In this document: piece after piece, positions 7,171 to 43,556 of the stretch
Position numbering within the stretch: the first letter of the stretch is position 1
Layout: every line of letters starts with the position of its first letter
IMG/VR virus record: IMGVR_UViG_3300025012_000028
Span: 124,001-188,000 of that record
Direction: 5' to 3' (one strand)
DNA length: 64,000 nucleotides
Translations under genes and position numbers: made by a program
The notes under the pieces: generated by a model
Told to the model about the DNA's origin: nothing
Database searches by the model: none
What the model saw: the letters and a program-made list of their open reading frames with translations, nothing else

Positions 7171-7184
7171 GGATTTATTTTGAG

Positions 7185-7523: not shown

Positions 7524-7576
7524 TTGTTCTCCTTAAGAATTATAGATTTCCAACCACTTGAAATAGGTTTGGTATA

Positions 7577-12262: not shown

Positions 12263-13486
12263 TTAGTTCTTTCCCTCGTTGAGAATTTCTTTGTACTTGT
12301 GAGCATAAACGTTCTCGACAAAGTTGATAGTGGCATCGTTCCCTCGCTTGAGGATATGTTTGGGAACATTCACATCAGCTTCCTTGAAAGTTCTTTCCAG
12401 ACGATTGATGATACTGAACTGATCGGCATCGAAAGGATAATCACAATCACATGCCCTCACGAAATCCCAAGCATAATATTTGACACGTTTGAAAAACCTA
12501 ATCAGCTTGACAGGTTTCATTTTGGTCAGGTTGTGGATCATGTGGTTGTTCGCCACAACATTGATCAGTTTATTCTCATGCTTCGTGAACCTCATGAAGT
12601 TGAGGTACGGAGTCAGAATCTTGGCGCTCTCGTGTTCATGACCGTAGTGGTGTCGCCCGTTCCGGTAATCCTCAGACTGAGCAGTAACCGCCTTACCGAC
12701 ATCATGGAACAGAACCGCAAGGAAAACCTGATACGAGTAACCTTTCTCCGCGCAGAGGTCGATACTTTTCATTACATGCTCAAATGCCGTATCGTTGACG
12801 TGGTGGGTATGTTCCGGTCCCGCATAGAAATTGGTCAGATCAGCAAGAGGTTTAAAATGATACTTCAGTGCATCAATTTCATGAAGAAATTTGAAGAACA
12901 TAGAAGGATATTTTGAATCCTCGTATACTTTCTTCAGTTCAGCACATACCCTATCAGTAGGAATGTTTACTAGTTTTTCGACGTTCTGTTTCATAAGATC
13001 CATAGTTTCCACGTCACATTTCAAACAGAAACGAGAAATGAACCTTGCGCCTCTGTAAATGCGAAGTGGATCTTCCACAAATGCGACCGGATTTACACAA
13101 CGAAGGATTTTATTTTTAACGTCCTCCGCGCCGTTGAATGGATCTACAATTTCCCCAGACAGGTAATGTTGTGCAATGCTATTGATGGTAAAATCTCTCC
13201 TACCAAGATCAACTTCAATCTGAACACCAGAATGAACTTCAAAGTCTTGATATTTTTCACCAACACATTTTTCAGAACGAGTCAAAGCAATCTCAGATCC
13301 ATCGGTATTGAGATACACCGGAAAACAATCCCCGACCTTGTTAAGAGTAGGAAAGAACTGTTCAAATGATTCTTGAGATGCTTGGACAGTGTAATCTACA
13401 TCTTTAGGTTCAACCCCCATGATAGCATCACGGACACAACCACCAACTTTATAAAGATGAAATTTTTCAGAAATGGTATCGAGCAT
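12263..13486 (-). CDS. cca: CCA-adding tRNA nucleotidyltransferase with HD domain
   Basis: VGGCVRD, DVD, DLGRRDFTINSIA, EDPLRIYRGARF and LFHDVGK motifs; start MLDTISE after AGGAGG. Confidence 0.9.
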   Translation of the reverse strand: MLDTISEKFHLYKVGGCVRDAIMGVEPKDVDYTVQASQESFEQFFPTLNKVGDCFPVYLNTDGSEIALTRSEKCVGEKYQDFEVHSGVQIEVDLGRRDFTINSIAQHYLSGEIVDPFNGAEDVKNKILRCVNPVAFVEDPLRIYRGARFISRFCLKCDVETMDLMKQNVEKLVNIPTDRVCAELKKVYEDSKYPSMFFKFLHEIDALKYHFKPLADLTNFYAGPEHTHHVNDTAFEHVMKSIDLCAEKGYSYQVFLAVLFHDVGKAVTAQSEDYRNGRHHYGHEHESAKILTPYLNFMRFTKHENKLINVVANNHMIHNLTKMKPVKLIRFFKRVKYYAWDFVRACDCDYPFDADQFSIINRLERTFKEADVNVPKHILKRGNDATINFVENVYAHKYKEILNEGKN

Positions 13487-13521
13487 ATTCCCTCCTAAAT
13501 TGAAATTCCCAACTGCCAAAG

Positions 13522-13550
13522 ATTGTAGCACAATTGGGAATTAAAGTCAA
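13522..13550 (-). promoter_or_regulatory. sigma70-type promoter overlapped by a hairpin
   Basis: TTGACT-17-TACAAT; AATTCCCAA...TTGGGAATT inverted repeat at 13504-13542. Confidence 0.7.
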
Positions 13551-13554
13551 TAGT

Positions 13555-13854
13555 TTATTTTGAATTATTTGTCTGGATGTATTTGGCTCTGAAAAAGTAA
13601 GGGACGGAAATCACTGGATATATTTCTCTATCAAACAGATTTGTGAACACAACATAATTCAATTTGTTTTTGTTACATGGCTCACATGCAACACAGAAAT
13701 TATCCTCACCAATCCCATTTCCCAGATCAACCGGGATGATATGGTCCAAACTCGGTTTCCCGACAATTGGTTTCCGGCAATAGAGACAAATCCCATTTTG
13801 TTCTTGGAATTTCTTTTCCCTCATTTCAATTCTAAATTGGTGCGACTCCCTCAT
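13555..13854 (-). CDS. small HNH endonuclease
   Basis: CLYC...SLDHIIP...G.G.DN..ACEPCNKNK. Confidence 0.85.
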   Translation of the reverse strand: MRESHQFRIEMREKKFQEQNGICLYCRKPIVGKPSLDHIIPVDLGNGIGEDNFCVACEPCNKNKLNYVVFTNLFDREIYPVISVPYFFRAKYIQTNNSK

Positions 13855-13855
13855 T

Positions 13856-14089
13856 TTAAAAATGTCTCCATGTTATGGGTGAACCCTTATGAATTGTCAC
13901 GATCACTTTCTTCTTGACCACCATACAATAACCGCTGATATAAACGTAAGTGACCTTCTTGAGTTTTTCTTTCTGTCCTGATTTATAAAATGATTTTAAT
14001 TTATCAATCACTTTAGTATCAGAATATTTTGCCCCTGTCCGTTCACGAAATCTATCAATTACATGGCGAGACACGATTAAATCTTCCAA
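13856..14089 (-). CDS. small basic hypothetical protein (possible RelE/DUF4258-like fold)
   Basis: SRHVIDRFRER...VIVTI; TTG start after AGGAGG. Confidence 0.45.
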   Translation of the reverse strand: MEDLIVSRHVIDRFRERTGAKYSDTKVIDKLKSFYKSGQKEKLKKVTYVYISGYCMVVKKKVIVTIHKGSPITWRHF

Positions 14090-14096
14090 AACAAAA

Positions 14097-14149
14097 AACC
14101 CTCCTAGAAAATATGGTAGGAATATACCACCTTCTAGGAGGGAAGTCAA
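14097..14149 (-). terminator. terminator hairpin ending the late effector array, overlapping a sigma70 promoter
   Basis: CCCTCCTAGAA...TTCTAGGAGGG followed by a U-tract on the minus strand; TTGACT-17-TATATT at 14121-14149. Confidence 0.75.
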
Positions 14150-14167
14150 CAATTATTTTAAGTTTAA

Positions 14168-15220
14168 TTATTTTGTCATAAATTTTACAAAAGCTTCACC
14201 GTCTTCAGACCTATCTTCAGAAAAAGTTAACTTTTTAGGAAACATATCTCTAACATGTTGAAGTAATTCAGACATAATGCCTTGTCTTCTATATTCGGGT
14301 TTGGTATAAATATTTGCTACATGTCCTATTCCTCGTTTATTACTTAATACCTGAATTACCGCTATATGCTGTTCATTTTCATATTTTAAAAATCTATAAC
14401 TTCCATATTTATCTTTTAATACTTTAACTGTAGGTGACAAAATTTCTTCTTTTTCAACACCAACATAAGGATGTTCTTTATTTAGGAAAGAAACTAAAGT
14501 TTCATTACTTCTAATACTCTCAAATATATTATTACTTTCCCCATCAAACATTCCTCGGTTGTCCACATGCTTAATCTGGAACGGGAAAAATGCGACCCAA
14601 TGAGTTCTTCCGTTAGGATGCTTCTTAAACACTCCGTCATATCCTAAAGCTTGATATATTTTCCAATTGAATTCTTTAGGATGATCTGAATAAAAATCAT
14701 TCGCCAAAGAGAATAGACCTTTCACGATATTATCATTCTCAATAACATGAATTTCCGTTGCGGCTCTGATTACTTTTTCTTTGCCTTCCCATTCAACATC
14801 ACCATAATTGGAAAGTGCGTCTGCTAATTCGGGCGAACGTTTAATAAAGAAATTGATTTTATCATATTTCACATTTCCAATCTTATCAGCATCAAGTGGT
14901 TTCTTAATACAAAGATAGACCGGATGAACTGTAGGATTGTCAGACCCGCCTAATTTAGAACCTTTGGTGGATTCCGTCTTTCCTGTATATCCTTCCGCTT
15001 CTGTAATGTCGGTTGTAAAATAAAATCCACTACCAAGCTGATCAGCACCCTGATTAGTAAACTCATATTTAAATTCTTCTATGGCAGTTCCAGATCCATG
15101 ATAGCAAACTAATGGTTGTTTATTTTCGTCAACGACCTTGGAACCCCTAAACCATTTCCTGAACTTAGGGTTCTTGGTGACATCTAATGCTTCAGATAGA
15201 AATTGTTTAAAAGATATCAT
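14168..15220 (-). CDS. leader-tagged putative internal head protein: ART-PolyVal-like ADP-ribosyltransferase plus C-terminal GNAT
   Basis: MISFKQFLSE leader; YHGS...GSGFYFT...PVYL.IKKP...LGYDGV...VAF...QIK; GNAT motif A IYTKPEYRRQGIMSELL. Confidence 0.75.
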   Translation of the reverse strand: MISFKQFLSEALDVTKNPKFRKWFRGSKVVDENKQPLVCYHGSGTAIEEFKYEFTNQGADQLGSGFYFTTDITEAEGYTGKTESTKGSKLGGSDNPTVHPVYLCIKKPLDADKIGNVKYDKINFFIKRSPELADALSNYGDVEWEGKEKVIRAATEIHVIENDNIVKGLFSLANDFYSDHPKEFNWKIYQALGYDGVFKKHPNGRTHWVAFFPFQIKHVDNRGMFDGESNNIFESIRSNETLVSFLNKEHPYVGVEKEEILSPTVKVLKDKYGSYRFLKYENEQHIAVIQVLSNKRGIGHVANIYTKPEYRRQGIMSELLQHVRDMFPKKLTFSEDRSEDGEAFVKFMTK

Positions 15221-16287
15221 TCGAACTCTCCAAAAACATTATCGACAAGATACTTCAGCGTTTTCCAAATACCAGACGAAGTAATACTTTCAAATGCCTT
15301 TTCATCTCTATGTGGATTATTTCTCATTTCTTTGTAGCTAGTCCACACATCTTCGAAGCGTATAAAGAACTCTTGTGGGTTTTCATATACATAATTGTAT
15401 GTCGCACCAGTGAACACTCTCTGTTCCCAAACACTATTATCTTCATAGATATTGAAACTAAGTTTGACATATTTATTTCTTCTATCTTCGTTATAACTTG
15501 CGACTTTTATTTCTTTCATCTCAGGAAGTTGTTCCACTTCTTTATAATAATGCCAATCTCTATCGACATGTCTAAAAGATAAATCTAATGCCGCCTGACA
15601 TCTAGTTTCTGCCCATCGTTCCGATGACCAACCTGATGGTAATTTGTTTCTCATGTGGTTGAGTACATTGACTATTAGATCAATCTTAGGGAAATTGAAA
15701 ATTTTCAATGGAATGTTATAATGGTCACACCAAGATTCGAATACATCAAAATTCATTGGATCATCAAATTGGTTAAACACTTCCACAGCTCCACCTAAAA
15801 TTTCAGGATAAACCGCAACAGCAATTTTACTATACTTGTGTGCGGCATCATAATGTTTATCTATTATAAAATAGAATTTAATTCCTTTGTTTACGTAGGA
15901 GTTCCAGTGTGCTGGTGTGCTTTCTGTAATACACCATTTAGTTCCTGCACCATACTTGCGACTGGCCTCATGACTTCTAATATGATAAACATAAAACTCT
16001 TCATTCTCAAATATTTTGTCTGCATCTTTCGTTTTTACAATTTTTGTTTTGCGCTCAACTTCCTTATCTCTTTTCTTATCCACAAACTGATAGAATGACC
16101 AAAACCCTTTTGGTATCCAATAAGAAATATCTTTTTCACTTCCAGATAATTGATTTTTTGCTTTTAATTCTTTGAACCATTCGATATATTTATCAATATC
16201 TTTATCATTGTAATCCGGATTTCTCCAAACTCGTTTGGCATCGGCAAAGGATTCTACCAACAATATATAGGATTTGAAAGAAATCAT
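15217..16287 (-). CDS. leader-tagged putative internal head protein, PcfJ-like domain
   Basis: MISFKSYILLVE leader; EASRKYGAGTKWCIT...W.SY...FYFI motif. Confidence 0.6.
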   Translation of the reverse strand: MISFKSYILLVESFADAKRVWRNPDYNDKDIDKYIEWFKELKAKNQLSGSEKDISYWIPKGFWSFYQFVDKKRDKEVERKTKIVKTKDADKIFENEEFYVYHIRSHEASRKYGAGTKWCITESTPAHWNSYVNKGIKFYFIIDKHYDAAHKYSKIAVAVYPEILGGAVEVFNQFDDPMNFDVFESWCDHYNIPLKIFNFPKIDLIVNVLNHMRNKLPSGWSSERWAETRCQAALDLSFRHVDRDWHYYKEVEQLPEMKEIKVASYNEDRRNKYVKLSFNIYEDNSVWEQRVFTGATYNYVYENPQEFFIRFEDVWTSYKEMRNNPHRDEKAFESITSSGIWKTLKYLVDNVFGEFE

Positions 16288-16499
16288 TTTATTTCCTTGA
16301 TATTATATGAATCGGGTGTGCGCCTAAAATAACTCTCCACCGATCTTCCTAGTTTCTTTGATAACCCAAAACACATTTTCTTGAATGCTTCATCCTGACT
16401 TGCCGCTTCAGTAGACAGATAATGATTTTCTTTATGGTAGCAGAATGTTCCTTTGAATTTGGATGCTTCCGAAAGATATTGTTTAAATCTAATCATCAC
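16284..16499 (-). CDS. small leader-tagged putative internal head protein
   Basis: MMIRFKQYLSE leader; 71 aa, basic, similar in size to T4 IPI. Confidence 0.65.
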   Translation of the reverse strand: MMIRFKQYLSEASKFKGTFCYHKENHYLSTEAASQDEAFKKMCFGLSKKLGRSVESYFRRTPDSYNIKEIK

Positions 16500-17418
16500 T
16501 TCTCACCTTAGCATCTTTCCATTTGTTAGACAAGAATTCAATTACTTCTTTTGTCGATTTGAGTTTATATCGATGCATTCTCTTCACAAGCTTCTCGACA
16601 CTCATAGATTTAATTTCATCACTTTTATTATTGTGTATATCATTATTTAGAGTTGCTAAAGAGTCACCACGATAGTTATGATAAACTATTTCATATCTTA
16701 AATCATCTGCTTCTGAAGAAAGATCTTTGACTTCATCTTTATCGAATAACTCGACATAGAGATTTATTTTTTCTGGTCTACCACCCATACCACTTTTCAC
16801 TTTTTTCTTATTCAGAAGCATGAATGATTCAAAGTCTTCATAAAAATAAACTGGAATGCTATAAACGTTTGAATAATCAAGTATCTTTTTGTACATTCTA
16901 TTTCTTTCCCATGCATTGTGTTGATCATTCAGAGAAAGTTTTTCAAACGCTTTATAGTCGGAATTAATGAGAAGGTAATTCTTATCTACCATAATATGAA
17001 TTTCTTTGATATATTCATGTGCATTTTCGATTATGGATGTGGGAGAAAAGATTCTGTCCTCATTCTCTTGGTTACGCAACCGCATATCAAGAGATACACT
17101 CGGTCTTCTGAAAGATGGCCCCCAATAATCTACACTCTTACCGGAAAGATTATGAGAAAGTTTCGTACCATCCAACACAAGATTGACCTGTTCGGAATTA
17201 CCAAAGCTTCTAGCATAACCACCATATTTAATTCTACTGGTAGAAAAATAAAATGGTTTAAACTTTTTCCCTTTGTACATCTGATCTGAAGCAGTTCCTA
17301 AATCAGATGCTAATCTAAACTTATCATCTTTAAGAATTGATACTAGTTTATGAACACCAGTATGATGATAGAGAATGGGTGATACACCTTCTATAAGAAA
17401 CTCTTTGAAAGATATCAT
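16489..17418 (-). CDS. leader-tagged putative internal head protein, ART-fold candidate
   Basis: MISFKEFLIE leader; LYHHT...IL, FSTSR and ENEDR (H / STS / ExE arrangement). Confidence 0.55.
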   Translation of the reverse strand: MISFKEFLIEGVSPILYHHTGVHKLVSILKDDKFRLASDLGTASDQMYKGKKFKPFYFSTSRIKYGGYARSFGNSEQVNLVLDGTKLSHNLSGKSVDYWGPSFRRPSVSLDMRLRNQENEDRIFSPTSIIENAHEYIKEIHIMVDKNYLLINSDYKAFEKLSLNDQHNAWERNRMYKKILDYSNVYSIPVYFYEDFESFMLLNKKKVKSGMGGRPEKINLYVELFDKDEVKDLSSEADDLRYEIVYHNYRGDSLATLNNDIHNNKSDEIKSMSVEKLVKRMHRYKLKSTKEVIEFLSNKWKDAKVRSDD

Positions 17419-17693
17419 TTTGGGATGTCCTGTACTTTTATTATTTTTGTAATTTTAGCATATTTTGGATGTACATAATCCAACCTATCAAATAAAACAT
17501 GAGCACGTTTAAGTGTCATTACTTCTGGTTCATCTGTTATATGAATATCATAACCACCCCAACCTATAAATTGTTTAATCCCTTTACGTTTTCCTACATA
17601 AATTACATATTCTTCTCTACCACTATTTCCAATTTTAGTGAGATAATCATCTAATGCTTTATCTTCCTTTATGAATTCTTTAAATGAAATCAT
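17415..17693 (-). CDS. small leader-tagged putative internal head protein
   Basis: MISFKEFIKE leader; ATGA overlaps at both ends. Confidence 0.7.
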   Translation of the reverse strand: MISFKEFIKEDKALDDYLTKIGNSGREEYVIYVGKRKGIKQFIGWGGYDIHITDEPEVMTLKRAHVLFDRLDYVHPKYAKITKIIKVQDIPK

Positions 17694-18508
17694 TTTTTCT
17701 TCCTTATCTTAACTAAAGAATCATCAAACAGAACATAATTCAATTCATTACTACTATCCCCAAAGTATTTAGTTCCGGCGATACCAATAGAAGCAAAATA
17801 CAAAGATGCTTCTTTGGCTGAACCAAATATATGTTTAGCTAGTCCATATATTTGTTCACCACTCTGGTTCCAAAATCTATATGATTCATTTTTTAAAACA
17901 TCATTCAGTGGGATTGACTTTACTTCATCCCCCATATCTTGAAGAATTCCTTTAGGATGAGCCTTCTCAAATAAAGGAATGAGTTTCTTTTTTATTGGTT
18001 CGCTCTGTTCTTTGAGAGATTTATTCCAATGAAGAAATTCATCTTCTGAAGGAATGATATCTACATGATACAATTTACCTTTTGACTTCTTAACTTCTCT
18101 TTGTTGATTGATATTCTGTGCTATTTCATCCATCTTTTTATAATAACCCAAACCATTATCTTTAGTCCACTCTTCTCCATTCAGAGCATCATTCAACATA
18201 CCAGATATAAACTTCTTTGCTTTTTTCAGACCCATAGTATAAATTAAATCTGCTGCTTTTTGTTCAGGTGTTCCAGCTTTAGTTTTAATTCCATTTATTT
18301 CGTAGAACCAAGGAACCGGAGCATCACCAACCTTTTTACCTATATACCATTCAGCAACTTCCTTCTTAGAACTGAAATATAAACCCCACCCATATGCAGC
18401 AGCACCCTCACCACTACCGATATGTTGAAGTTTGAACTCATCAAAATCGTAGGGTGATCCATGATAAGCAATCGGAGATTCAATTAAAAACTTTTTGAAT
18501 GATATCAC
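17690..18508 (-). CDS. leader-tagged putative internal head protein, ART-PolyVal-like domain
   Basis: GTG start MISFKKFLIE; AYHGSP.DFDEF...GSGEGAAAYGWGLYFS...Y, GKLY.V, GIAG.KY and NYVLFDD motifs. Confidence 0.75.
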   Translation of the reverse strand: MISFKKFLIESPIAYHGSPYDFDEFKLQHIGSGEGAAAYGWGLYFSSKKEVAEWYIGKKVGDAPVPWFYEINGIKTKAGTPEQKAADLIYTMGLKKAKKFISGMLNDALNGEEWTKDNGLGYYKKMDEIAQNINQQREVKKSKGKLYHVDIIPSEDEFLHWNKSLKEQSEPIKKKLIPLFEKAHPKGILQDMGDEVKSIPLNDVLKNESYRFWNQSGEQIYGLAKHIFGSAKEASLYFASIGIAGTKYFGDSSNELNYVLFDDSLVKIRKKK

Positions 18509-20090
18509 TCACCCTCCCCATCTGTTTTCCACTGCATAACATCTTTAAAGATAAGATATTCATTATCACTGAACCACCCACTTCTCAACCTAAGATGTTT
18601 GACCTCATTGGCGATTGTGGTTTCAACTGGTTCTTGGTGATATTTATCCTTATCCCCTCCTACAAAACCTTTCTTTTTGAACTTGGTGTTGTCGTGGTAA
18701 ATTTTATCTAAAAGCGCCAACATCTGCTCTGCGCCCTGTGAATATTTTTTCTCGTGCTCATGTCCTTCCCAAGATGCTTTCTCGTCCTCTAGGTAATCCT
18801 CAAGCGTTTTACCGGCATTTGTTTTCATCTGTACATATGACGCTTCAATATATGCTCGATACCACTCTTGATCTGAAAGAGGTTCCCATTTAACCCCATA
18901 AATTTCGGCAAGAGTTGTGATATCAGATTCATAAGATTTGATCAGTTTGATATTATCTAATTTTCTTTTTTCATGTCTTGCGTCTACTTCTTTCGATTCC
19001 ATCTCTTTACGAGAAAATTCAGGAACAAAATCGGTTCTGTCCTTCAGAGTTTTCCAATCTTCACCAATCTCTTTGGCTATATCAATAAATTTAGTTTCGG
19101 CATCCCACGAAAAGTTATAAGGTTCCTTCTCCGAATAGATGTTAACTCTGATTCTATGGTGATCATACTTTTTAGAATATTTGTGGGGCTTCTCACCCAG
19201 ATTAAGATTATCCATATAGGATTGAGGGAAAGAAAATTCTGTATCAATCCTTCTACCTTTCTTAGTCCATGACTTTTCTTTGCTAAATTCTTTGATTTTA
19301 TCTCCAATCTGCATGGCGATCATAGCCGCAAGCTTCCTATGTAACTTAGCTTCATCTTTTGATGTTCCTAAACCACCAGCAGAAAGATATTCGGATTTGG
19401 GATTTAGTTCATAAATGTCTACGATCTTGAAGAACTTCTTATTGAAGAACACGGCTTGCCACGGTTCCCTATCATTGATGATTGCCGACTTTTGGTTTCT
19501 GGCTTCATCAATAAGTCCATCATAGCCCAAGGATTTCCAGAACTGCATTTGTTCTTCGCCAGTTTTTAATTCAGGTTTCACATCATCAAAATATCTATTC
19601 TTCTGAAAATAGAATTCTTCTGGATTTGAAACCTGTGACATTTTAAATAAAGCTTGTTTGTCGTTACATTTATATCTTTTTTAGCTGCTTTGAGATAGTA
19701 ATCATTCAATCCCAACGCTCTAAGAATCCTATCCATGATATGATTCTGCATGGTCTGAAGGTGGAGAATGTTAGGTGAACCAACTAACTCAATAACTCTG
19801 AGGAATCTAGCTCCACGACCATACCAAACGTCTGCGGGATGCTGGCATAAATAAGATAAAGGATAAAGGTAAATTCCTTCTGGGTCTGAGTGGGAGGAGT
19901 CTCGTTGGTGTGGTGATGAAAAATTCTTATTTAAAATATCGGTGTCGGGATTCATTGTAAAATTACACCAATATTGATTTTCAGATGATGTTTTTAATAT
20001 TTTATTCCATTTTTTATAAAATAAATGGAATTGCTTGGGATAGATATCATGAAAATGAATCTCAGTTAAAAAGCTTTTGAAAGAAATCAT
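18505..20090 (-). pseudogene. leader-tagged ART-like gene split by a -1 frameshift (ORFs 19578-20090 and 18505-19641)
   Basis: Leader MISFKSFLTE and PEGIYLYP lie in the 5' ORF; LGYDGLID...EPWQAVFFN lies in the 3' ORF; the second frame opens exactly at the A6 run 19677-19682. Confidence 0.7.
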
Positions 20091-20115
20091 TATTATGCCT
20101 CTGTGTGTTTAAAAT

Positions 20116-20123
20116 TATTTATA
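20116..20123 (-). promoter_or_regulatory. T4-type late promoter TATAAATA
   Basis: Exact consensus about 25 nt upstream of the MISFK start at 20090. Confidence 0.75.
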
Positions 20124-20149
20124 AAATCTATATTGAGGATAAACCAATC

Positions 20150-21079
20150 ATGAAAGATAAAACATATTATATCATTTACGAAACTACAAATTTATTAAAT
20201 GGTAAAAAATATAGGGGAGCGCATAAAACTAAAAATATAAATGATGGGTATATGGGGAGTGGTGTGATAATTAATCAAGCAATTTTGAAATATGGAAAAG
20301 AAAATTTTGAAACAATTCATTTAGCATATGCGTTATCATATGATGATCTTTTTTGGTTAGAAGAATATGTTTTCGTGACTAAAGAATGGGTTGATTTGCC
20401 ACATTCTTATAATTTAAGAGTGGGTGGATGTGGCAAATATTACGAAGAACAAACTAAACAAACATGTTTAGACAAATATGGGGTTGAATTCTATTCCCAA
20501 ACTGAAGAATGTAAACTTAAGAAAATTAACACATGTTTAGAAAAATATGGAGTTGAATTCTATGTTCAAACCGAAGATTTTAAGTTGATAATGAAAAATA
20601 AATACAGCGAAGATAACCCACATCCCTTAACTGGCAGGCCAGTTTTACCAGAAACAAAAGAAAAACTCAGAATCGCAAATTTAGGAAAAGTCACGTCAGA
20701 AGAAACCAAAGCAAAAATAAGCGTAAAATCTTCTGGTAAAAACAACCCTAATTATGGTATTAAACATACAAATGAGACTAAAGAAAAATGTAGCAAAGTA
20801 AATCAAAAATATGAATATAAACTAATTTCACCTAATGGTGAAATTTTCACAACTTTATCATTATTTAATTTTTGTGCCGCAAATGAACTGGATAGAAATG
20901 CATTTAGAAATATTCTTAGGGTTGGTAGAACGACCGTAGAATGTCCCAAAAATGTTACACAATGTAGTAAGTTAAGATTTAATACTACTGGATGGTCGAT
21001 AGAAGAAATGGAGATTATCCCAACTTCACCCAAAGCAAAGTATCCAAGAGAGAAATCATCAATTCCACTCCGTTGGTAA
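20150..21079 (+). mobile_element. GIY-YIG (Seg-like) homing endonuclease with NUMOD3 repeats
   Basis: YIIYETTNLLNGKKYRGAH...DGYMGSG...AILKYGKENF...E...YNL.VGG; ETKEKL / ETKAKIS / G.NNPNYG repeats; likely ATG at 20150 after GAGG. Confidence 0.85.
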
Positions 21080-21652
21080 ATTCCAAACTTCTATTTTATC
21101 TTTTGGTTTAACTACTTTCGAATTGGTGATCAGTTTCATATTGAATAGAACAACCATTCTTTCTCCCCACCCAAATGCGTTATCAACAATTGAATAGTCC
21201 ACACCATGTTGCACTAAGAACCGTCTCAAATTGTTACTGTCGGATGGTTTGATTGCTTCATAGTTGACCATTATGTTTATGAAGATGACTGCGCTAATTC
21301 TATCTTTGTAATTATATTTTGATGCTGCCACTAAAACTTCTTTCCGTTTAGATTTGATACAGTAATATTTCACAAAATCATCGATGGCATGAAAAGGAAT
21401 TGAGGCTTCTTTAGCATCCACACCCTTTTGAATTGTGACAAGATATAACTTCCTACTTCCCTTTTTATATTTCTCTACCACATTATATGAAGTAGTCAGA
21501 TATAAACCGGGAGCAAATTGGAATCTACCTTTCTTCTGAATATAATTTTCATCGGGACCATAATCTAAATTGCCCCCATGCCAGAAAGAAAGAGTATTGG
21601 GTTCTGTAGATGGGGAAATGAGATCTTCGAAGATGGTTTTATATGATATCAT
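21059..21652 (-). CDS. leader-tagged putative internal head protein, ART-like domain
   Basis: MISYKTIFE leader; FWHGG...GRFQFAPGLYLTT...KLYLV...GVDYSIV...VVLFN. Confidence 0.65.
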   Translation of the reverse strand: MISYKTIFEDLISPSTEPNTLSFWHGGNLDYGPDENYIQKKGRFQFAPGLYLTTSYNVVEKYKKGSRKLYLVTIQKGVDAKEASIPFHAIDDFVKYYCIKSKRKEVLVAASKYNYKDRISAVIFINIMVNYEAIKPSDSNNLRRFLVQHGVDYSIVDNAFGWGERMVVLFNMKLITNSKVVKPKDKIEVWNLPTEWN

Positions 21653-22236
21653 TCGGTTTCCTCGTTACAAAACTTTACCCAATCTTCAACACTGTTCAAA
21701 TGTTCTTTAAGCTCATATAAATCATTTATCACAAAAACCCATTGTCGCATACCGATACAATAACAGAGATGTCTACAGAGATATTGTGCTCTATTATAAC
21801 TATCAAGAGCCATATGAGATTTACCATAATCTTTGAGTCTCTGATATAATGCACGTCTGAAATCATTTTCAGTGGGATATTTTTCTAAGAACTTCTCTCT
21901 GTTCTCACTCCTGTTGATTCTATAATCATAATTATTGGAAATGTTTTCTTCCATCTCACGTTCAAACCCATAACTGTCCGTGAGATACTTCAGAACTTTA
22001 TTGACTTTATCCTTACAATATTCATAACCATGTGTATCCCACATGATTCTTTGAAATGCTCGGTTAATAATATCCCCTGCGTGTTCGACTACTGGATTAA
22101 GGACACCACCACCCATCAACATCTGAACCTTTAACATTAAATCTTCGGGTTCACCACGTTGATCTAAAGCTATCTGTATGCTTTTGGCTTTAAAAGAATC
22201 ATCTGATTCAGACAAATATTCCCTAAAAGAAATCAC
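21649..22236 (-). CDS. leader-tagged putative internal head protein, unknown helical domain
   Basis: GTG start MISFREYLSE; 4-nt overlaps on both sides. Confidence 0.7.
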   Translation of the reverse strand: MISFREYLSESDDSFKAKSIQIALDQRGEPEDLMLKVQMLMGGGVLNPVVEHAGDIINRAFQRIMWDTHGYEYCKDKVNKVLKYLTDSYGFEREMEENISNNYDYRINRSENREKFLEKYPTENDFRRALYQRLKDYGKSHMALDSYNRAQYLCRHLCYCIGMRQWVFVINDLYELKEHLNSVEDWVKFCNEETE

Positions 22237-22913
22237 GCTGCCTCCAAATAACCCGGTTTAGTATACTTAGCCAGAGCCGGATTCTGATCATCTACAATAA
22301 TTTCATCTAATACATTCAATTCGTCTGGATCGTGCCACGGATCGATACACACTATCATACCATCAGAAGGACGCTCCATGAAATTCCCAACGTGAATATC
22401 CAGCCTACCGAATTCTCTTCCCTCTTCCATCTTTAACATTGCGTTTCTGAGACTCGGACCTTGAGGAAACATATCTTTATTCTTCTCTGCTCTTCTACCA
22501 ACCCGACCCACGAACCATTCATCCTGTACATCCATAATTACTTGATCAACGAATGTCTCATTACCTTCCGACATAGGTTCAAGCTTTTCTAATTTGACCA
22601 ACTTAATCAATTCGTCTTTACGGGAACGTCTATGGAAAGCAGGAATGGTTTTCATTCGCCCCAACACTCTAGGAAAATGGGGATTGTTTCTGTTCTCGGA
22701 TTTGAGAATATATCTAAGGAAGGATTCATAAGACTGATCTAAAGTCCAAACCTTGATCACATAGTTCTTACTTGGTATTTCAAAAACCTGTGAGTGAGCA
22801 CCACTACCCACTTCTCTCCACTTAAGTTTCTTGAAAAGATTTTTGAGGGAATTGGCACCATAGAATTTCTTCACATTGTATAACTCTAATAAAAATTGTT
22901 TGAAAGAAATCAT
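22233..22913 (-). CDS. leader-tagged protein-kinase-like enzyme
   Basis: MISFKQFLLE leader; VGSGAHSQVF glycine loop, VIK lysine, LEKL, DIHVGNFM catalytic loop, CIDP metal-binding motif. Confidence 0.8.
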   Translation of the reverse strand: MISFKQFLLELYNVKKFYGANSLKNLFKKLKWREVGSGAHSQVFEIPSKNYVIKVWTLDQSYESFLRYILKSENRNNPHFPRVLGRMKTIPAFHRRSRKDELIKLVKLEKLEPMSEGNETFVDQVIMDVQDEWFVGRVGRRAEKNKDMFPQGPSLRNAMLKMEEGREFGRLDIHVGNFMERPSDGMIVCIDPWHDPDELNVLDEIIVDDQNPALAKYTKPGYLEAA

Positions 22914-22940
22914 AGGTTTGTCCTTTGAGATAATTTCTTT

Positions 22941-22948
22941 TATTTATA
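22941..22948 (-). promoter_or_regulatory. T4-type late promoter TATAAATA
   Basis: Exact consensus about 27 nt upstream of the first array gene. Confidence 0.8.
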
Positions 22949-22950
22949 TA

Positions 22951-22986
22951 AAACAAAAGGATGAAGCTTTCACTTCATCCTTTTGT
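22951..22986 (-). terminator. intrinsic terminator
   Basis: ACAAAAGGATGAAG...CTTCATCCTTTTGT hairpin after 22987..23562. Confidence 0.8.
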
Positions 22987-23562
22987 CTATTTAGCGTTAT
23001 ATACTACACAACTTCGGGTTTCTTGAGGGTAGACCGGACAAGTTTTATCTGCTTTCAAACATGTATAACAAAGAGATTTCAGTTCGTACTCAACAAAATT
23101 TTTAGCGATGTTTTTCAGTTCAAACAAACCTTTTGTATTGTCTACATAATAATCATAGTTGTAATTAGCAACTCGATCATCCGATACATTTCCTAAAACT
23201 CTTTCACCAAATCTCTCTACCAACATTGTCTTTGCGTCTGGATACCAAGATTTGAATTTATCTATCTCTTCTGGTTCCCGAATATGAACAAAAATATGGT
23301 GTGTTTTTGGAAGTACATCTATAAACTCCACTAGATAACTTATAGGACCATTATAGAATTCAGTCGAAAGTTTCTTTAGTTCAGATAAAAACAATCTACC
23401 ATGTTCATCTTTAACAGAATCCCATCCCAATAACTCTGCGGCTTCTTTAACTCTATCTACTGATGAAAGGTTATTGACCATACCAAAATCAAATTCTTCC
23501 TGAACATATTCTATGAATTGATCTTTCCCAGACCCGCCCTGTCCATTTATGATGATGATCAT
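22987..23562 (-). CDS. deoxynucleoside monophosphate kinase-like P-loop protein
   Basis: INGQGGSGKD Walker A, GWD..KD..GR.FL, HIREPEEI and YDYYVDN motifs; next to dUTPase. Confidence 0.7.
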   Translation of the reverse strand: MIIIINGQGGSGKDQFIEYVQEEFDFGMVNNLSSVDRVKEAAELLGWDSVKDEHGRLFLSELKKLSTEFYNGPISYLVEFIDVLPKTHHIFVHIREPEEIDKFKSWYPDAKTMLVERFGERVLGNVSDDRVANYNYDYYVDNTKGLFELKNIAKNFVEYELKSLCYTCLKADKTCPVYPQETRSCVVYNAK

Positions 23563-24006
23563 TTACACCCCCGAATGACCATGACCACCAGCACCACGTT
23601 CCGATTCGGAGAGTTCGTCCGATTCGATAAATTTAATTGTAGGTTTGGGGAGAATAATCATCTGAGCCATTCTATCACCAACCTGATATTCTTTGCCCCT
23701 GTGAGCGTCAAATTTGGGCTTGAAGCGCACTGTCACGTTTCCTCGATACCCAGAGTCGATCACACCAGAAGTTGAGAAAATAAGGTCATATTTAGAGACA
23801 GAACTTCTAGGCCAGATCTTACCAAAGTAACCTTCGGGAATTTCAAATGCTAGATCGGTTGTATATTCGATATAATCTGAAGTCTCATTAATATCAGCAG
23901 CGACCAAATCAAAACATGCATCATCATGTTTTGCGTACTCAGGAATTACAGCTTTATCAGACAACCTTTTGATCTTCACCACCAACGCTTTTTTGCAATT
24001 ACACAT
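23563..24006 (-). CDS. dut: trimeric dUTPase
   Basis: ACFDL, PRSS, GVIDSGYRG, GDRMAQ and RGAGGHGHSG motifs. Confidence 0.92.
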   Translation of the reverse strand: MCNCKKALVVKIKRLSDKAVIPEYAKHDDACFDLVAADINETSDYIEYTTDLAFEIPEGYFGKIWPRSSVSKYDLIFSTSGVIDSGYRGNVTVRFKPKFDAHRGKEYQVGDRMAQMIILPKPTIKFIESDELSESERGAGGHGHSGV

Positions 24007-24021
24007 TCAATTCTTCTCCTT

Positions 24022-24651
24022 TTAGTTTCTGAACCACACAATATGTTTATCATCCAGAACATGAGTCTTAACTACATTCGACCCATGCCAATCACCCATA
24101 TCATCCACATCCTCATTTTTATGTTGTCTTAGATCAAAGCCGGTTCCATCTTCTTTTTTGATCATGATACAACCCTGATCCAACATCAACCTATCAATGA
24201 TTGCTGCTTGACCATAATAGTAAATCTTCCTACCAACTTCAGATTCAGGATCGAAGTAATTAAAAGGGTGCTCACTCATTTCAAAGGTACGATACTGCGC
24301 TTTGGAAAAGGCATAAGCTATATCTCCAAATCCAAATTCATCGACCTGCCTGTTATTCAGAAAGATTTCAACGTATCCAGTTTTCCTAATATCCCAATCG
24401 TCCCATTTATATTTGAGAGTATTTCCTTGTTTAATTCGAATATCCCATGCTGCTCGATTGGTTCCCTTATCGATGAACGGAATCCAATCTACTGATACTT
24501 CTTCATCTTCATCCTCACGCCCAACATATTTGAGCCACCACGTTTCGGGACAACCATTCCATTTGCCCAATTCATGTAAATGTTCTGGACGATCCCAAAC
24601 ACCAGTGAGTCGCCCATTCACCACAATATCAAAAATTTTTCTTTCTTTCAA
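24022..24651 (-). CDS. hypothetical protein
   Basis: 209-aa ORF with GGAGG RBS. Confidence 0.65.
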   Translation of the reverse strand: MKERKIFDIVVNGRLTGVWDRPEHLHELGKWNGCPETWWLKYVGREDEDEEVSVDWIPFIDKGTNRAAWDIRIKQGNTLKYKWDDWDIRKTGYVEIFLNNRQVDEFGFGDIAYAFSKAQYRTFEMSEHPFNYFDPESEVGRKIYYYGQAAIIDRLMLDQGCIMIKKEDGTGFDLRQHKNEDVDDMGDWHGSNVVKTHVLDDKHIVWFRN

Positions 24652-24823: not shown

Positions 24824-25593
24824 TCATGTGTTTTCTCCGTTGTGAAAGTTATAGATAGCGTCTGCCAATTTGTCTGGATTGATAATATCCTCATCAAAAC
24901 TCCATCCTTTCCAACCTCCAACTAAACAATAATCCCTTCGAAAATCGTTCCACCAATTTTGTTTCTGAGCAAATTTCCAAAGTTTACCAAAATTTTCCCA
25001 CGTTGAAAAATTCATTTTGTAAAATGAAGGTGTATATGAAACTTCAAACCCACACCTCAAACACACGTATTTATCATACCGTTCTTGAAAAGTTGGTCCT
25101 TCGTGTGAATATTCGTCGTGCCAACATTCACCCACCAATTCTGTTAAGAATTTATCTCTATCAGACTTTTCAGACATGGCTTCTCCTTCAAGAAATTGAA
25201 AACCTTATTAGCAAATTTATCTGGATCAATCTCTTTAAGAAAAAGAGATTGATATTTTATACAAACTGGATTTAAACCAAGAGCGGTATATGGTTTTTCT
25301 TTGTCCTGATCTAATATTGCTCCGATAACATGATGGTCTTGTTGCTTCAGCCAATTGAGTAGTTTAAAGAAACCATCCGGTGTGGAGAAATCATTCTTCT
25401 GTCTAAATTGAACATTGTTTTTATCATCCCAAGGGTGAATATGATAACTGTATTCCCCACACTTGCAGATATGAACAATTTCATTATCGTGATATGGTAT
25501 GGAATGATCCGATTCGTGCCAGCAATCACCAATCAACCTAGTCAGAAATTTCTCTCTTTCAACATTGGAATAAAGTTCACTGTCTGGAATCAT
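24824..25593 (-). CDS. two tandem paralogous hypothetical proteins (24824-25177 and 25144-25593)
   Basis: Shared R.KFLT.L.G.CWH, CxxCG/CxCG, FST...F.KL and I.PDK.A....NF motifs. Confidence 0.7.
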
Positions 25594-26390
25594 TTCAACT
25601 TACCTCCTTTTAATTTGCAATTATTGCCATGCCACCTTAAATAATTTGTCTTATTACTTTCTTTGTTGCAAAACTCACATATAAATTTTTTCCCAATTAC
25701 ATTTGTAAAATTTTGATTTTCTCTTAGTATTTTATATATCTTACTAAGTTTAAGATTAAATTTTTCTGATATTATTTCTGCACATATATTTTTATTTTTC
25801 ATATCGACAATTTCATCTATAATTAGCTGTGGTACATATATAGTTTTAGAAGTTCTTAAAAAATTAAGAACTTCTTCTGTATGTTTTTTGCCATAAAAAG
25901 GATTCAATTTCCCTTTTTTGCCGTACATAGAGTTTTTAACTCCACTGTTATCTTCTGATTGTTTTTTTCTAAAATCATCTGATCTTTTTTTGCCTATATG
26001 TAAAACTCCTTTATAATTAGGATTCTTTTCACCTTTCATATTATCAGATAATATTTTTATGTGAGAAGGTGCAAGTAGTTTACCTTTTTTGAGATCGGAC
26101 ACCAATTTGGAGTGTTCCGTTTTTATCCATTCGTATGTTCTATTTGTATATTTTTTCTTATTACAATACATCATCATATTTGCTGCAAATATTAAAGAAG
26201 GTGTTTTGTGACTTTTGGCTAATAATAAGTGTGCTATAAAATGTTCTCTGGCCTTCAATCTAACTATATTTTCTTTTGTATTTGTACCACCCATACATTT
26301 TGGTATAATGTGATGCCTTTCTCCATATCCTATAAACGTTTTTGTTTTACGAGTCTCTATAAGTTGATTATAAATTTTCAGATAGTTCAT
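25590..26390 (-). mobile_element. HNH (Mob-like) homing endonuclease with NUMOD3 repeats
   Basis: MNYLKIY..LI...ERHHIIPKCMGG...EN...L.AREHFIAH.LL; GEKNPNY and NPFYGKKHTEE repeats; RWHGNNCK tail. Confidence 0.88.
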
Positions 26391-26430: not shown

Positions 26431-26431
26431 A

Positions 26432-40892: not shown

Positions 40893-42629
40893 TTAATTAA
40901 CCATATACCCAAATCCAGATTCATCTTTTAAAAAGTTCCTTGCGTCCAATTGTTCCCAACCGTCGAACCCGTAGTACGGCTGACTCGTTTTTATTTCAAA
41001 TCCAATTCCATTTTCCAATTCAAAATCGGAATCAGTTAATAACAACATCACAGTTTTGAAATTCGTATATACTTTCATTGGTGCCTGATTCCATTTATTA
41101 TCTACATCATTAATAAATGCCTCATCTTCTAGGTCGTTATATGTTTCCCCTCCAATTGTTATATCAAAACTTTTCAGCCCACCGTCTAAAGCAGACATCA
41201 TTTCGTTATATCTGCCACCTTCAATACCTCTCTCCGCTGCCCATCTACATTGAGTATAAAGATCATCTCCCTCATCTTCCAAAAACTGGAACATATCATC
41301 TTCCCAATTTTCTTCATCCTCGTCCGGATATTCTTTTCTAATATACTCTTCAACTTTCTTTTCGTCCAACATTTCATAACATTCTCTTATAGTATCATCA
41401 CTCACTTCTATATCTGGGTCCGAATCTTGGTCTACTATCCATTTGGTTGTATCGTCACCATAATTTTCAACTAGGTCTTCTAAATCTCTGGCTTCATATA
41501 TGACTGCAAATTCTTTCTTTTCATCCCACTCTAAAGAATGAAGATCTTTCGAAATCCAGAGTTCATTCATTCTCTGCATAAATGAATCGGTTTTTCCTAC
41601 TTTCTTATAATAATCCATCAAACCCATCAACTCGGGTCGTTGTTCAAATAAATCTTCTTTAAATTCATCTGACAAATCTTCGGTACTAAAATCCGAATCT
41701 TGTCCATAAGAGGAACGTTCTATCCCTTTGATATAATAACTTTCGGTTCCCTTGGTTGATGTTACTTCTTTATGGAGCAGCAAATCCAGAATGTACTTGT
41801 GGTACTTCTCAACGGGTTTGGTATTTTGTTTGCCCTTCATTTGATATAAGATATGATCATCACTACCCATCTCAAAAGTCAGATGGGGTTCCCATAACCA
41901 CGTAGACGGTTCAGATTTGCGTTTGTTGAGGTATCGGAGGGAAAGTAAGGTACTACCATGACTTCCAGTTCCGCAGTGTCCCATTGCCCTACTCTCGTTG
42001 CTACAGTAGTTGGTGTTGAGGTCTACCCAATACCAACCGTTCCCATACTCGATTATAGGAAAACATCTTTTGTCTGGATAACCTTCTTCATGATCCAATG
42101 GTTGTTTGATATACTGAACTGTTCCATCTAACTCTGATGCCCATTCCTTTTCAATCTTTTCCATATCGGCAAACACTTCTTCGGGGAATTTACCGGTAGG
42201 ATTATAATCATCAATCTCTTTTAAGTGAAGATCCAGAAAGTGTTTATATTGAGTCAATGTTTTTCTAGGTAGAAAATCATTTTGCATTTTACTATCTAAT
42301 ATGTCGGGTCTATCCGCCAGATTAAATTTTTTACATTCGCTTTGTAAAAGTTTTTTGTAATATTGTTTTATGTTCTGTTCAGCAACTTTATCATCTAGAG
42401 TTAAATTGTCTAGTGTCCATGCCATATATATCTGCATTAATTTATTATACCAAATAATTCTAAAATTCTTTTTTAAATACTCTGGCGATTGAAGAACATA
42501 AGATCTATAATATGTGTCGATTACCGGAGTAACTTTACCCAATTCCAAAACTTTGGTAAACATCTGCGAATAATCATATGCCTCAAGCAGCAGAGGAGCA
42601 TGTAAAAAGGTTTTAAAAGAAATCATCAT
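40893..42629 (-). CDS. leader-tagged putative internal head protein, PcfJ-like domain plus acidic C-terminus
   Basis: MMISFKTFLHAPLLLE leader; ESRAMGHCG...LLSLR...PHLTFE...QMKGKQN.KP..KY motif. Confidence 0.7.
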   Translation of the reverse strand: MMISFKTFLHAPLLLEAYDYSQMFTKVLELGKVTPVIDTYYRSYVLQSPEYLKKNFRIIWYNKLMQIYMAWTLDNLTLDDKVAEQNIKQYYKKLLQSECKKFNLADRPDILDSKMQNDFLPRKTLTQYKHFLDLHLKEIDDYNPTGKFPEEVFADMEKIEKEWASELDGTVQYIKQPLDHEEGYPDKRCFPIIEYGNGWYWVDLNTNYCSNESRAMGHCGTGSHGSTLLSLRYLNKRKSEPSTWLWEPHLTFEMGSDDHILYQMKGKQNTKPVEKYHKYILDLLLHKEVTSTKGTESYYIKGIERSSYGQDSDFSTEDLSDEFKEDLFEQRPELMGLMDYYKKVGKTDSFMQRMNELWISKDLHSLEWDEKKEFAVIYEARDLEDLVENYGDDTTKWIVDQDSDPDIEVSDDTIRECYEMLDEKKVEEYIRKEYPDEDEENWEDDMFQFLEDEGDDLYTQCRWAAERGIEGGRYNEMMSALDGGLKSFDITIGGETYNDLEDEAFINDVDNKWNQAPMKVYTNFKTVMLLLTDSDFELENGIGFEIKTSQPYYGFDGWEQLDARNFLKDESGFGYMVN

Positions 42630-43010
42630 TTACCTCAACGTCCCAAGTTTAATAAAATCACCCGAATCTAACAGTTCGTGTACTCCGGTTCCATATTTCA
42701 TCCCAGAATGTTTAACTGCATATTGACTTCCAGATTCCTCTTCACCTATAGTTTTTGTAAGATACATAGGGGAATCAAATTTAATATTCCAACTATAACC
42801 AGTCACCTGATAAACTTTACCAGTCTTATTTGATTTGAATCTATCACCCACTCCCAAGCGCCATCCTTGGTATGCCTCAATCTTTTCCATCATGTCTTTC
42901 ACACCAAGCTTAATATCATCCCTCAATTTCTTATGAAACTCCCTTTCGGGTCTGGTGATAAGAGGAATGGGTTCTTTATCTTCGGTGATAAATTCTTTGA
43001 ATGAAATCAT
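42630..43010 (-). CDS. leader-tagged putative internal head protein
   Basis: MISFKEFITE leader. Confidence 0.7.
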   Translation of the reverse strand: MISFKEFITEDKEPIPLITRPEREFHKKLRDDIKLGVKDMMEKIEAYQGWRLGVGDRFKSNKTGKVYQVTGYSWNIKFDSPMYLTKTIGEEESGSQYAVKHSGMKYGTGVHELLDSGDFIKLGTLR

Positions 43011-43124: not shown

Positions 43125-43556
43125 CTAGAAATCATCATCTTCATCGGGAGGAATGACTTCTACAACATCATATTTCTCACCAATATATTTATTTGAATAT
43201 AAAAAGTCCTTCATATCTTCTACATCGACCCAACCTAATTTAAGATTGGTGGAAGTCAGAGTTATAATGCAGCTATACTTTTTAAATTTCTTCATTTCTC
43301 CAACAAAGTTAATTTCCAAACACAGAGGTTTTTCTAATTCAAATTTCCGCGCAACATCTGTATGTAGAATGGTATCCCCGAAACCATAAACAATTTCACC
43401 ATCCACAACAACTACTCTCATGATATCCCAACTCTTAACAACCTCTATGGATTTGATTTCATCAAAGGTGGGATTTTCGAATATAAGTTGTTCCTCACGC
43501 TTATACATGTAGGAATCTTTATAATTTTCGGATAAAAATTTTTTGAATGATATCAA
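43125..43556 (-). CDS. leader-tagged putative internal head protein
   Basis: TTG start MISFKKFLSE. Confidence 0.65.
   Translation of the reverse strand: MISFKKFLSENYKDSYMYKREEQLIFENPTFDEIKSIEVVKSWDIMRVVVVDGEIVYGFGDTILHTDVARKFELEKPLCLEINFVGEMKKFKKYSCIITLTSTNLKLGWVDVEDMKDFLYSNKYIGEKYDVVEVIPPDEDDDF

Follow-up and report, generated by a model that had tools for sequence, protein, structure and literature searches.

Bacteriophage T4 packages internal proteins with unrelated bodies into its head behind one short N-terminal tag, the capsid targeting sequence (CTS), which spans 10–19 residues and is marked by aromatic residues at positions 4 and 7, Leu or Ile at position 8, and a Glu at the cleavage site. 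The first 10 CTS residues suffice for encapsidation (experiments of Mullaney and Black, reviewed by Kuhn and Thomas, PMC9026906), residues 4 and 7 being the main determinants of targeting and residues 8 and 10 those of processing (PMC9026906). Cleavage is performed by the prohead protease gp21, which has the specificity I/LxE and is inactivated by mutating H85 and S140 (PMC12991175, 2026 preprint). Among its substrates is T4 Alt. This ADP-ribosyltransferase (ART) is synthesized late, undergoes processing by gp21, and is packaged into the head and injected (PMC9026906, PMC5512222), losing a 7-residue N-terminal propeptide as well as a C-terminal one (PMC9026906). Polyvalent proteins, for which injection has been predicted (Iyer et al. 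2017, PMC5512222), combine two to fifteen disparate effector domains in a single polypeptide (PMC5512222). Here we analyze a window of 64,000 nucleotides (nt), positions 124001–188000 of the 214,553-bp contig IMGVR_UViG_3300025012_000028, in which an array of ten minus-strand genes (14168–22913) encodes proteins that share a short leader and otherwise differ. An initial annotation of this sequence had read the leader as a T4-type CTS. That interpretation is supported on all computationally testable predictions, and we consider it likely that the shared leader is a CTS of this type, with packaging, cleavage, injection, and effector action following as in T4. Coordinates below are those of the window unless another contig is named.

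The array genes, named c01 to c10 in transcription order from 22913 down to 14168, were recovered in an open reading frame (ORF) listing of 13000–24500, which confirmed all ten genes of the initial annotation (n = 10; the start of each is the higher coordinate in Table 1). Their leaders follow the pattern M-I-S-F-K-x-[FY]-[LI]-x-E. A six-frame scan of the whole window returned the ten array genes together with c11, c12, and c13, a total of 13 leader ORFs against a mean of 0.02 and a maximum of 1 in 200 composition-preserving shuffles passed through the same scan. Two further genes, p300 and p306, lie in the head module of the same genome, bringing the number of leader genes to at least 15 over the ~137 kb of the 214.5-kb genome that was covered. 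The initial annotation was thus correct in counting ten genes and too narrow in extent, the leader being carried also at 40893–43556 (c11–c13, hereafter the second cluster) and by the two head-module genes on contig L140. Position 4 is F/Y in 15/15 leaders and position 7 is F/Y in 14/15, with Ile in c03; all 15 end in [LI]-x-E, at residue 9, 10, 12, or 15, and within the array at residue 9, 10, or 12, as had been noted for every array leader.

Conservation of the leader lies at the protein level. In an all-against-all BLASTP comparison, similarity was confined to residues 1–10/16, with the exception of the ART domains of c05 and c10; the earlier statement that the bodies diverge completely therefore stands apart from this pair, which share ART-PolyVal. 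Synonymous codons vary within the leader (ATA/ATT, TCT/TCA, TTT/TTC, CTA/CTT/TTA/TTG, and GAA/GAG), the start codon is ATG, GTG, or TTG, and no conservation is seen in the DNA ahead of it. Since the same amino acids are specified by different codons and translation begins at three start codons, selection acts on the leader peptide. The synonymous variation and the ATG and GTG starts had been noted from the array; TTG adds a third.

Comparison with T4 provides the closest match. In NC_000866, the N-terminus reads MKTYQEFIAE in both IPII and IPIII and MKTFKEF in IPI, whose cleavage site lies further along. The most conserved positions of the leader are the same four that govern targeting and processing in T4: aromatic 4, aromatic 7, L/I 8, and Glu 10. 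The consensus here is MISFK.[FY]L.E as against MKT[YF] in T4, and MKTFKQFI.E-type leaders in other contigs bridge the two forms, so that the position-specific pattern bears out the assignment to the T4 CTS type. The array follows a deoxynucleoside monophosphate (dNMP) kinase gene homologous to T4 gene 1, and in T4 the order is 1-57A-57B-ipI; the position of the array is equivalent to the T4 ipI locus.

The remainder of the expected machinery is encoded in the same genome. The window contains homologs of the gp44 clamp loader, the gp45 clamp, and a gp25-type baseplate wedge, with gp32 and gp33 homologs just past its high end. The morphogenesis module was reached via overlapping contigs and exact-protein look-ups, all overlaps being 100% identical at the DNA level, and comprises in T4 order gp13, gp14, gp15, terminase, sheath, two tube proteins, and portal. 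It includes a prohead protease of family Peptidase_S77 (PF03420; L142:13719-14405, E 2.5e-16), which matches T4 gp21 in BLASTP (E 1e-12) and conserves the residues aligned to catalytic H85 and S140. A gp22-type scaffold (T4_CASP, E 4e-20) and a Gp23 major capsid protein (E 3e-91) are also present; the Pfam domain of the latter begins at residue 63, leaving room for a T4-like propeptide, and L-x-E sites occur at residues 44 and 52. The initial annotation had invoked a T4-type protease system, and the gp21 homolog with conserved His and Ser, along with the gp22 and gp23 homologs, provides one. The leader paralogs p300 and p306 adjoin a second Gp23-like gene, probably that of the capsid-vertex protein. 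Taken together, the match to T4 is strong for motif, protease, scaffold, promoter motif, and locus. At the level of sequence the phage is distant from cultured relatives: core proteins are only about 26–40% identical to T4 or other cultured-phage counterparts, the closest cultured gp44 proteins (~40% identical) being those of pelagiphage Mosig, Pseudomonas phage pf16, and cyanophages. When 50,697 phage records were searched with the array by megablast, no match emerged, and tblastn of a 700-aa baseplate protein and of p306 against cultured phages found none either.

The array is delimited as the initial annotation had described, by an upstream hairpin followed by the T4-type late-promoter motif TATAAATA and by a downstream hairpin with a U-run (Table 1). 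Both hairpins were confirmed by explicit folding; an automatic terminator scan had recovered only the inner stem of the downstream one and missed the upstream one. On the minus strand TATAAATA occurs seven times (n = 7), and 5/7 copies lie 24–32 nt upstream of a start codon, namely those of c01, c04, and three virion genes starting at 50981, 60681, and 63212. In the leader-bearing contigs of other phages described below, TATAAATA was found within 80 nt upstream of 13% of leader ORFs versus 1% of random windows. Sigma-70-type promoter scans of both clusters yielded only shuffle-level matches. Junctions between array genes are mostly 4-nt ATGA/GTGA overlaps. The description as ten genes requires two qualifications: c04 is split into two ORFs in this contig, and a homing endonuclease on the opposite strand interrupts the array.

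Table 1. Coordinates of leader genes, bounding elements, and associated features (window positions unless another contig or phage is named; aa, amino acids)
Feature	Coordinates	Strand	Description
dNMP kinase (T4 gene 1 homolog)	22987..23562	(-)	directly upstream of array; phrog_139, E 1.3e-9
Intrinsic-terminator hairpin	22955..22984	(-)	ends upstream dUTPase/dNMP-kinase unit; -23.1 kcal/mol, z -7.8, U-rich tail
TATAAATA, T4-type late-promoter motif	22941..22948	(-)	27 nt upstream of c01 start
c01	22233..22913	(-)	226 aa, leader MISFKQFLLE, protein-kinase-like body
c02	21649..22236	(-)	195 aa, GTG start, leader MISFREYLSE
c03	21059..21652	(-)	197 aa, leader MISYKTIFE, Glu at residue 9
GIY-YIG/NUMOD3 homing endonuclease	20105..21079	(+)	inserted in array on opposite strand; Pfam NUMOD3 2e-10, DUF7487 8e-10
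Second TATAAATA	20116..20123	(-)	25 nt upstream of c04 start; restarts the interrupted array
c04, N-terminal piece	19578..20090	(-)	170 aa, leader MISFKSFLTE, ends in frame change
c04, C-terminal piece	18505..19641	(-)	378-aa ORF, no leader or ribosome-binding site of its own
c05	17690..18508	(-)	272 aa, GTG start, leader MISFKKFLIE, ART-PolyVal domain
c06	17415..17693	(-)	92 aa, leader MISFKEFIKE
c07	16489..17418	(-)	309 aa, leader MISFKEFLIE, DarT/Tpt1-like ART fold (predicted) and helical C-terminal domain
c08	16284..16496	(-)	70 aa, leader MIRFKQYLSE
c09	15217..16287	(-)	356 aa, 12-residue leader MISFKSYILLVE, conserved 200-aa N-terminal domain
c10	14168..15220	(-)	350 aa, leader MISFKQFLSE, ART-PolyVal and C-terminal GNAT acetyltransferase
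Intrinsic terminator	14099..14142	(-)	closes array; -25.9 kcal/mol, z -5.7, then UUUUUU
c11	43125..43556	(-)	143 aa, TTG start, leader (M)ISFKKFLSE; second cluster
c12	42630..43010	(-)	126 aa, leader MISFKEFITE; second cluster
c13	40893..42626	(-)	577 aa, 15-residue leader MISFKTFLHAPLLLE, acidic body; second cluster
p300 and p306	L140:14684-15586 and L140:15589-16509		paralogs elsewhere in same genome; leaders MITFKSFLTEA (p300) and MISFKQYLTEA (p306)
JA13 genes with a different leader (starts)	11425, 12025, 12705, 13156, 18388, 19435, 20377, 22161		Dickeya phage vB_DsoM_JA13; one is a homolog of ART-PolyVal protein c10

Several of the bodies behind the leader belong to enzyme families of the effector type. 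The ART and GNAT assignments of the initial annotation were confirmed by Pfam: c10 matches ART-PolyVal (PF18760, 3.2e-19) and GNAT (PF00583, 2.7e-7), and c05 matches ART-PolyVal (PF18760, E 1.1e-7, 33.2 bits versus a cut-off of 31.2). A kinase had been proposed for c01, which weakly matches phrog_15752 (T7 0.7-type kinase; E 4.2e-6) and in which a Gly-rich loop, VIK, and D-I-H-x-x-N can be read, with no Pfam or PDB match and only two homologs, too few for a model; we thus refer to c01 as weakly kinase-like, retaining the call in part. For c09, the proposed relationship to PcfJ (PF14284) received no Pfam support: c09 itself has no Pfam match at E ≤ 0.1 and no PDB fold match, and none of its homologs is annotated as PcfJ, one having only PF12799. 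Its only support comes from Foldseek matches in BFVD, which include a protein annotated 'PcfJ like' (E 6.3e-4) beside a PA5oct 'structural protein'. Of the 21 homologs of c09 besides the phage's own copy, most have the same leader type. The combination of two effector domains is found only in c10; the other window proteins have at most one recognized effector-type domain, and several have none.

A further ART fold is predicted for c07. Its AlphaFold2 model has a predicted local distance difference test (pLDDT) score of 91.5, and leader residues 1–10 score 56 versus >90 afterwards, so that the leader is modeled as a flexible tail ahead of the fold. Foldseek identified DarT and Tpt1 as the best PDB folds with probability 1.0 but E ~1e-2 and template modeling (TM) scores of 0.27–0.42, which are low because only the N-terminal domain aligns. 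Residues H18, S59, Y98, E118, E120, and R122 are invariant in the family, and the invariant His, Ser, and Glu-x-Glu would fit an ART active site. The c07 family profile found no sequence match in PDB, and hhalign of this profile against c10 and c03 revealed no relationship; the guess that c03 might be another ART, prompted by motifs read by eye, is unsupported. Unlike the DarT of DarTG, c07 has no DarG-like partner and possesses an extra helical C-terminal domain.

The c07 family comprises 1415 representative sequences at E ≤ 1e-3, whose members are either proteins of roughly 300 aa or domains inside proteins of 1086–2566 aa. The domain occurs within family proteins P0035, P0062, P0153, and P0056, which also carry ART-PolyVal, NUDIX, GNAT, LysM, or PcfJ (Pfam), and within P0081. 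The link to polyvalent proteins drawn in the initial annotation is thereby borne out. Where the conserved body is preceded by an N-terminal extension of ≤16 residues, 78/100 extensions end in [LIVMF]-x-E right before it, and these vary by lineage (MKLQELFE, MRAHEFLTE, and others; P0026–P0175), a hint that head-targeting tags removed by proteolysis may form a broader class.

Two small genes, c06 (92 aa) and c08 (70 aa), each directly follow an ART-fold gene, c05 and c07, respectively. Their products could be co-packaged partners or inhibitors of the preceding ART-fold proteins; an essential immunity role for c08 is disfavored because a nonsense allele of c08 exists. Near-identical contigs were found in several groundwater metagenomes and reveal such variation within the population. 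The c04 gene (18505–20090) is frameshifted in the window, L128, and L131 and is an intact 528-aa gene in two other samples (L129:4609-6195 and L130:7261-8847); the c04 pieces and the naturally intact copy were searched separately. The c08 nonsense allele (window 16349) is present in at least one other contig, L132, and L130 and L131 each show a single-base difference in c08 (base unmapped). Contigs compared for c04 and c08 are otherwise about 99.9–100% identical. With c04 frameshifted and c08 truncated by a nonsense codon in parts of the population, the cassettes look individually dispensable.

The leader is widespread in uncultured T4-like phages. An exact degenerate-DNA search of IMG/VR found at least 120 loci, and the figures that follow refer to the 120 loci listed. 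The match lies at the start of an ORF in 112/120, and recognizable T4-like core genes are present in 34/120. A relaxed scan of these loci (1.0 Mb) identified 199 leader ORFs in 108 loci, with F4 in 195, K5 in 186, F/Y7 in 185, L/I8 in 169, and E10 in 176; I, K, or L stands at position 2 and S or T at position 3, and in composition the leader grades into the T4 form. The leader peptide is kept across contigs whose core genes are only 25–47% identical. The bodies fall into 97 BLAST families, and Pfam analysis of 42 body representatives returned Alt-type ART (ADPrib_exo_Tox), ART-PolyVal, GNAT, amidoligase, HNH, LysM, HEAT repeats, DUF6267, and others.

The location of these genes is also informative. 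The initial annotation had recommended scanning the whole genome and related phages for the leader, and both scans recovered additional genes beside head genes: p300 and p306 next to the putative capsid-vertex gene, and, in other phages, leader genes directly upstream of gp21 and of the portal gene. In L009 and L044, a 115-aa leader gene lies directly upstream of gp21, where T4 has the prohead-core genes 67 and 68, and in L012 a leader gene lies downstream of gp23. In L020 (IMGVR_UViG_3300025288_000189), seven leader genes (3442–9422) are situated between the sheath, tube, and portal genes; this array mixes MKTFKQFI.E and MISFKQFI.E forms, and one gene, with TATAAATA upstream, directly precedes the portal gene.

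A DUF6267-like family adjoining gp41/uvsX (L066:1049-2290 and relatives) accounts for 24/199 leader ORFs. Members from environmental T4-likes, Phage C48C1, and Methylophilales phage Melnitz (match from residue 1) have the leader, and in Stenotrophomonas phage DLP_6 the gene (L146 20001-21236) begins MMKFTQFLAE; the homolog in cyanophage P-HM1 (L144 19977-21182) starts without a leader. Because the family has the leader in some phages and not in P-HM1, the tag is a module that can be gained or lost. No leader ORFs were found in the first 50 kb of Pseudomonas phage pf16 or in a 41-kb stretch of P-HM1, and universality of the leader among distant T4-likes was therefore dropped. In the non-T4 jumbo Dickeya phage vB_DsoM_JA13 (L001, MH460460), at least eight genes share another leader, M-x-[ILVT]-[LVE]-[IVF]-S-[LI]-S (Table 1), which suggests lineage-specific N-terminal tags for one and the same class of cargo.

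We propose the following scheme. The leader genes would be transcribed late from TATAAATA promoters, and the ~10-residue N-terminal tag would bind each protein to the gp22-type scaffolding core during prohead assembly. A gp21-type S77 prohead protease would cut after the Glu of the terminal [LI]-x-E; the mature proteins would remain beside the DNA in the head, pass into the host upon infection, and may act there as first-wave host-modifying or counter-defense effectors. Because at least 15 unrelated proteins share a T4-type tag, the phage probably packs the tagged proteins into the head and injects these into the host together with the DNA. It has been recovered from metagenomes only, and we infer physical packaging, cleavage at Glu, injection, and action of the cargo in the host by analogy with T4. 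Several observations weigh against this scheme. The second cluster (40893–43556) lacks an exact TATAAATA of its own; several cargoes are acidic (isoelectric point 4.5–6.4), unlike the basic internal proteins of T4; a 577-aa cargo and at least 15 cargo species raise questions of head capacity and copy number; the kinase and ART activities are predicted from family or fold only; and the c04 frameshift and c08 nonsense allele indicate that some cassettes may be decaying.

Four other explanations were weighed against it. An unlikely one holds that the leader targets the prohead and that the proteins mainly serve inside the capsid, as core or scaffold accessories or as DNA-condensing or pressure-modulating components, and are not injected effectors. 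This would accord with T4 IPII and IPIII, which are abundant and DNA-associated and whose effector role is still unclear (PMC9026906), with the placement of the leader paralogs p300 and p306 in the head gene module, and with the basic character of eight of the 13 window proteins. Against it, the cargo includes at least four enzyme domains of kinds characteristic of injected proteins that modify the host (ART-PolyVal twice, GNAT, and a DarT-like ART), the relatives of the cargo are modules of polyvalent proteins, and in T4 both Alt and IPI exert their action in the host after injection. We give little credence to the suggestion that the leader is some other N-terminal signal, such as an inhibitory propeptide or degron that silences toxic enzymes, or an address for the tail or baseplate. 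The presence of potentially toxic ART folds among the cargo, the position of the second cluster directly after tail-fiber genes, and the short h-x-E-terminated extensions of the c07 family in many unrelated lineages, which also fit a zymogen design, speak for such a signal; however, the match of the leader to the T4 CTS extends beyond the cleavage residues to positions 4 and 7, whose role in targeting was defined by experiment, ten flexible residues ahead of a fold are unlikely to block an active site, and a function as zymogen would come on top of head targeting without excluding it. Both of these are variants of the CTS explanation and no true alternatives to it.

By contrast, the codon data and the different folds contradict two further readings. 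It is very improbable that conservation resides in the nucleic acid, whether as a translation-initiation or regulatory RNA element or as recombination microhomology for cassette shuffling. The 4-nt overlaps at most junctions suggest translational coupling, homing endonucleases lie in and near the array, and modular shuffling via short conserved motifs is known in T4-like phages (PMC2839356, PMC4122927), yet synonymous sites vary freely, the F/Y and K/R changes use different codons, three start codons are used, conservation spans precisely the stretch from the start codon to Glu10, and the peptide persists across contigs with strongly diverged core genes. Scarcely credible, finally, is the notion that the leader genes form one paralogous family diverged beyond recognition, or that their resemblance arose by chance. 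The tandem arrangement and the true paralogy of c05 and c10 in the ART domain might be cited for the former, but the bodies differ in fold and Pfam family and range from 70 to 577 aa, and the c07, c09, and DUF6267-like families have their own homologs elsewhere, including the leaderless member in P-HM1; as to chance, shuffles gave 0.02 leader ORFs versus the 13 observed. A T4-type CTS remains the explanation that we prefer.

The window has other features of note. Within 25 kb there are four endonuclease-type genes (n = 4; 13555–13854, 20105–21079, 25590–26435, and 37600–38298; HNH, GIY-YIG/NUMOD3, homing-endonuclease phrog, and DUF559), two of which flank or interrupt the array and might help with cassette turnover. 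A 1000-aa beta-helix/pectate-lyase tail-spike-like gene (43770–46772, minus strand) is located directly upstream of the second cluster; the 2-kb composition window at 44001–46000 inside this gene has a GC fraction of 0.52 versus about 0.35 for the rest of the window, and the gene is probably a recent horizontal acquisition. A PurZ-like adenylosuccinate-synthetase homolog is encoded at 34513–35727 on the minus strand (phrog_1211, E 5e-68), and from this homology the phage DNA may contain 2-aminoadenine in place of adenine. The same window contains a dUTPase gene (23563–24006) and the dNMP kinase gene (22987–23562) beside the leader array.

Compared with described systems, the locus shares with T4 the tag with its key positions, the unrelated bodies behind one tag, the gp21, gp22, and gp23 homologs, the late-promoter motif, and the location after the dNMP kinase. 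It differs in having at least 15 tagged genes versus 3 in T4, in being known from genes alone, and in the nature of its cargo, which reaches 577 aa and is in large part predicted to be enzymatic (three ART folds, GNAT, and kinase-like), unlike the small basic proteins of T4. An ADPrib_exo_Tox ART with a MISFK-type leader in another contig resembles T4 Alt; the window ARTs, unlike Alt, are of the ART-PolyVal (H-Y-E) and DarT/Tpt1-like types and do not belong to the R-S-E Alt/VIP2 clade. With polyvalent proteins the array shares the repertoire of ART-PolyVal, GNAT, and kinase domains and a predicted delivery with the DNA; unlike in polyvalent proteins, the domains are encoded by separate genes, each with its own address tag. 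In the giant phages phiKZ and SPN3US, many head-internal proteins likewise undergo cleavage after Glu through an S77-related protease and reach the host by ejection, but they are cut at a different short motif ending in Glu, have no single short conserved tag, and belong to genomes that are not T4-like. The phiKZ prohead protease recognizes S/A/G-x-E.

The principle of this system is already known from T4, and the novelty claimed in the initial annotation was overstated, diverse T-even internal proteins that share only the CTS having been described since the 1990s (PMC3012670, PMC9026906). What appears to be new is the size of the set in one genome, the presence of enzymatic, polyvalent-type cargo in cassettes that each have their own tag, the recurrence of an almost identical tag throughout a large body of uncultured T4-like phages, and the fact that candidate injected proteins can be listed from sequence alone. 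Within the set of papers searched, none contains the leader string.

Few injected proteins are, to our knowledge, known outside T4, P1, N4, and phiKZ-like phages. With a 10-residue tag recognizable by eye and a conserved protease, the discovery of injected proteins becomes a sequence search, and the leader could widen the T4 CTS packaging toolbox if it is functional in T4. The finding joins the T4 CTS system with the polyvalent proteins, in that the same domains would be deliverable as separate tagged cassettes. Extending this, we tentatively entertain the possibility that M-[IK]-[ST]-F-K-x-[FY]-[LI]-x-E is a near-universal address label over a large, mostly uncultured part of the T4 superfamily, that giant polyvalent proteins and tagged cassettes are interchangeable modes of delivery, and that cassettes are gained, lost, and swapped at a hyperplastic locus with the help of homing endonucleases. 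If the label is indeed near-universal, the whole head-packaged injected 'effectorome' of these phages would be readable from sequence, with hundreds of body families in it, among them ARTs of the nucleic-acid type, kinases, acetyltransferases, and a large number of uncharacterized folds. Injected proteins act before any phage gene expression, and those encoded by these cassettes would therefore be prime candidates for counter-defense and host take-over.

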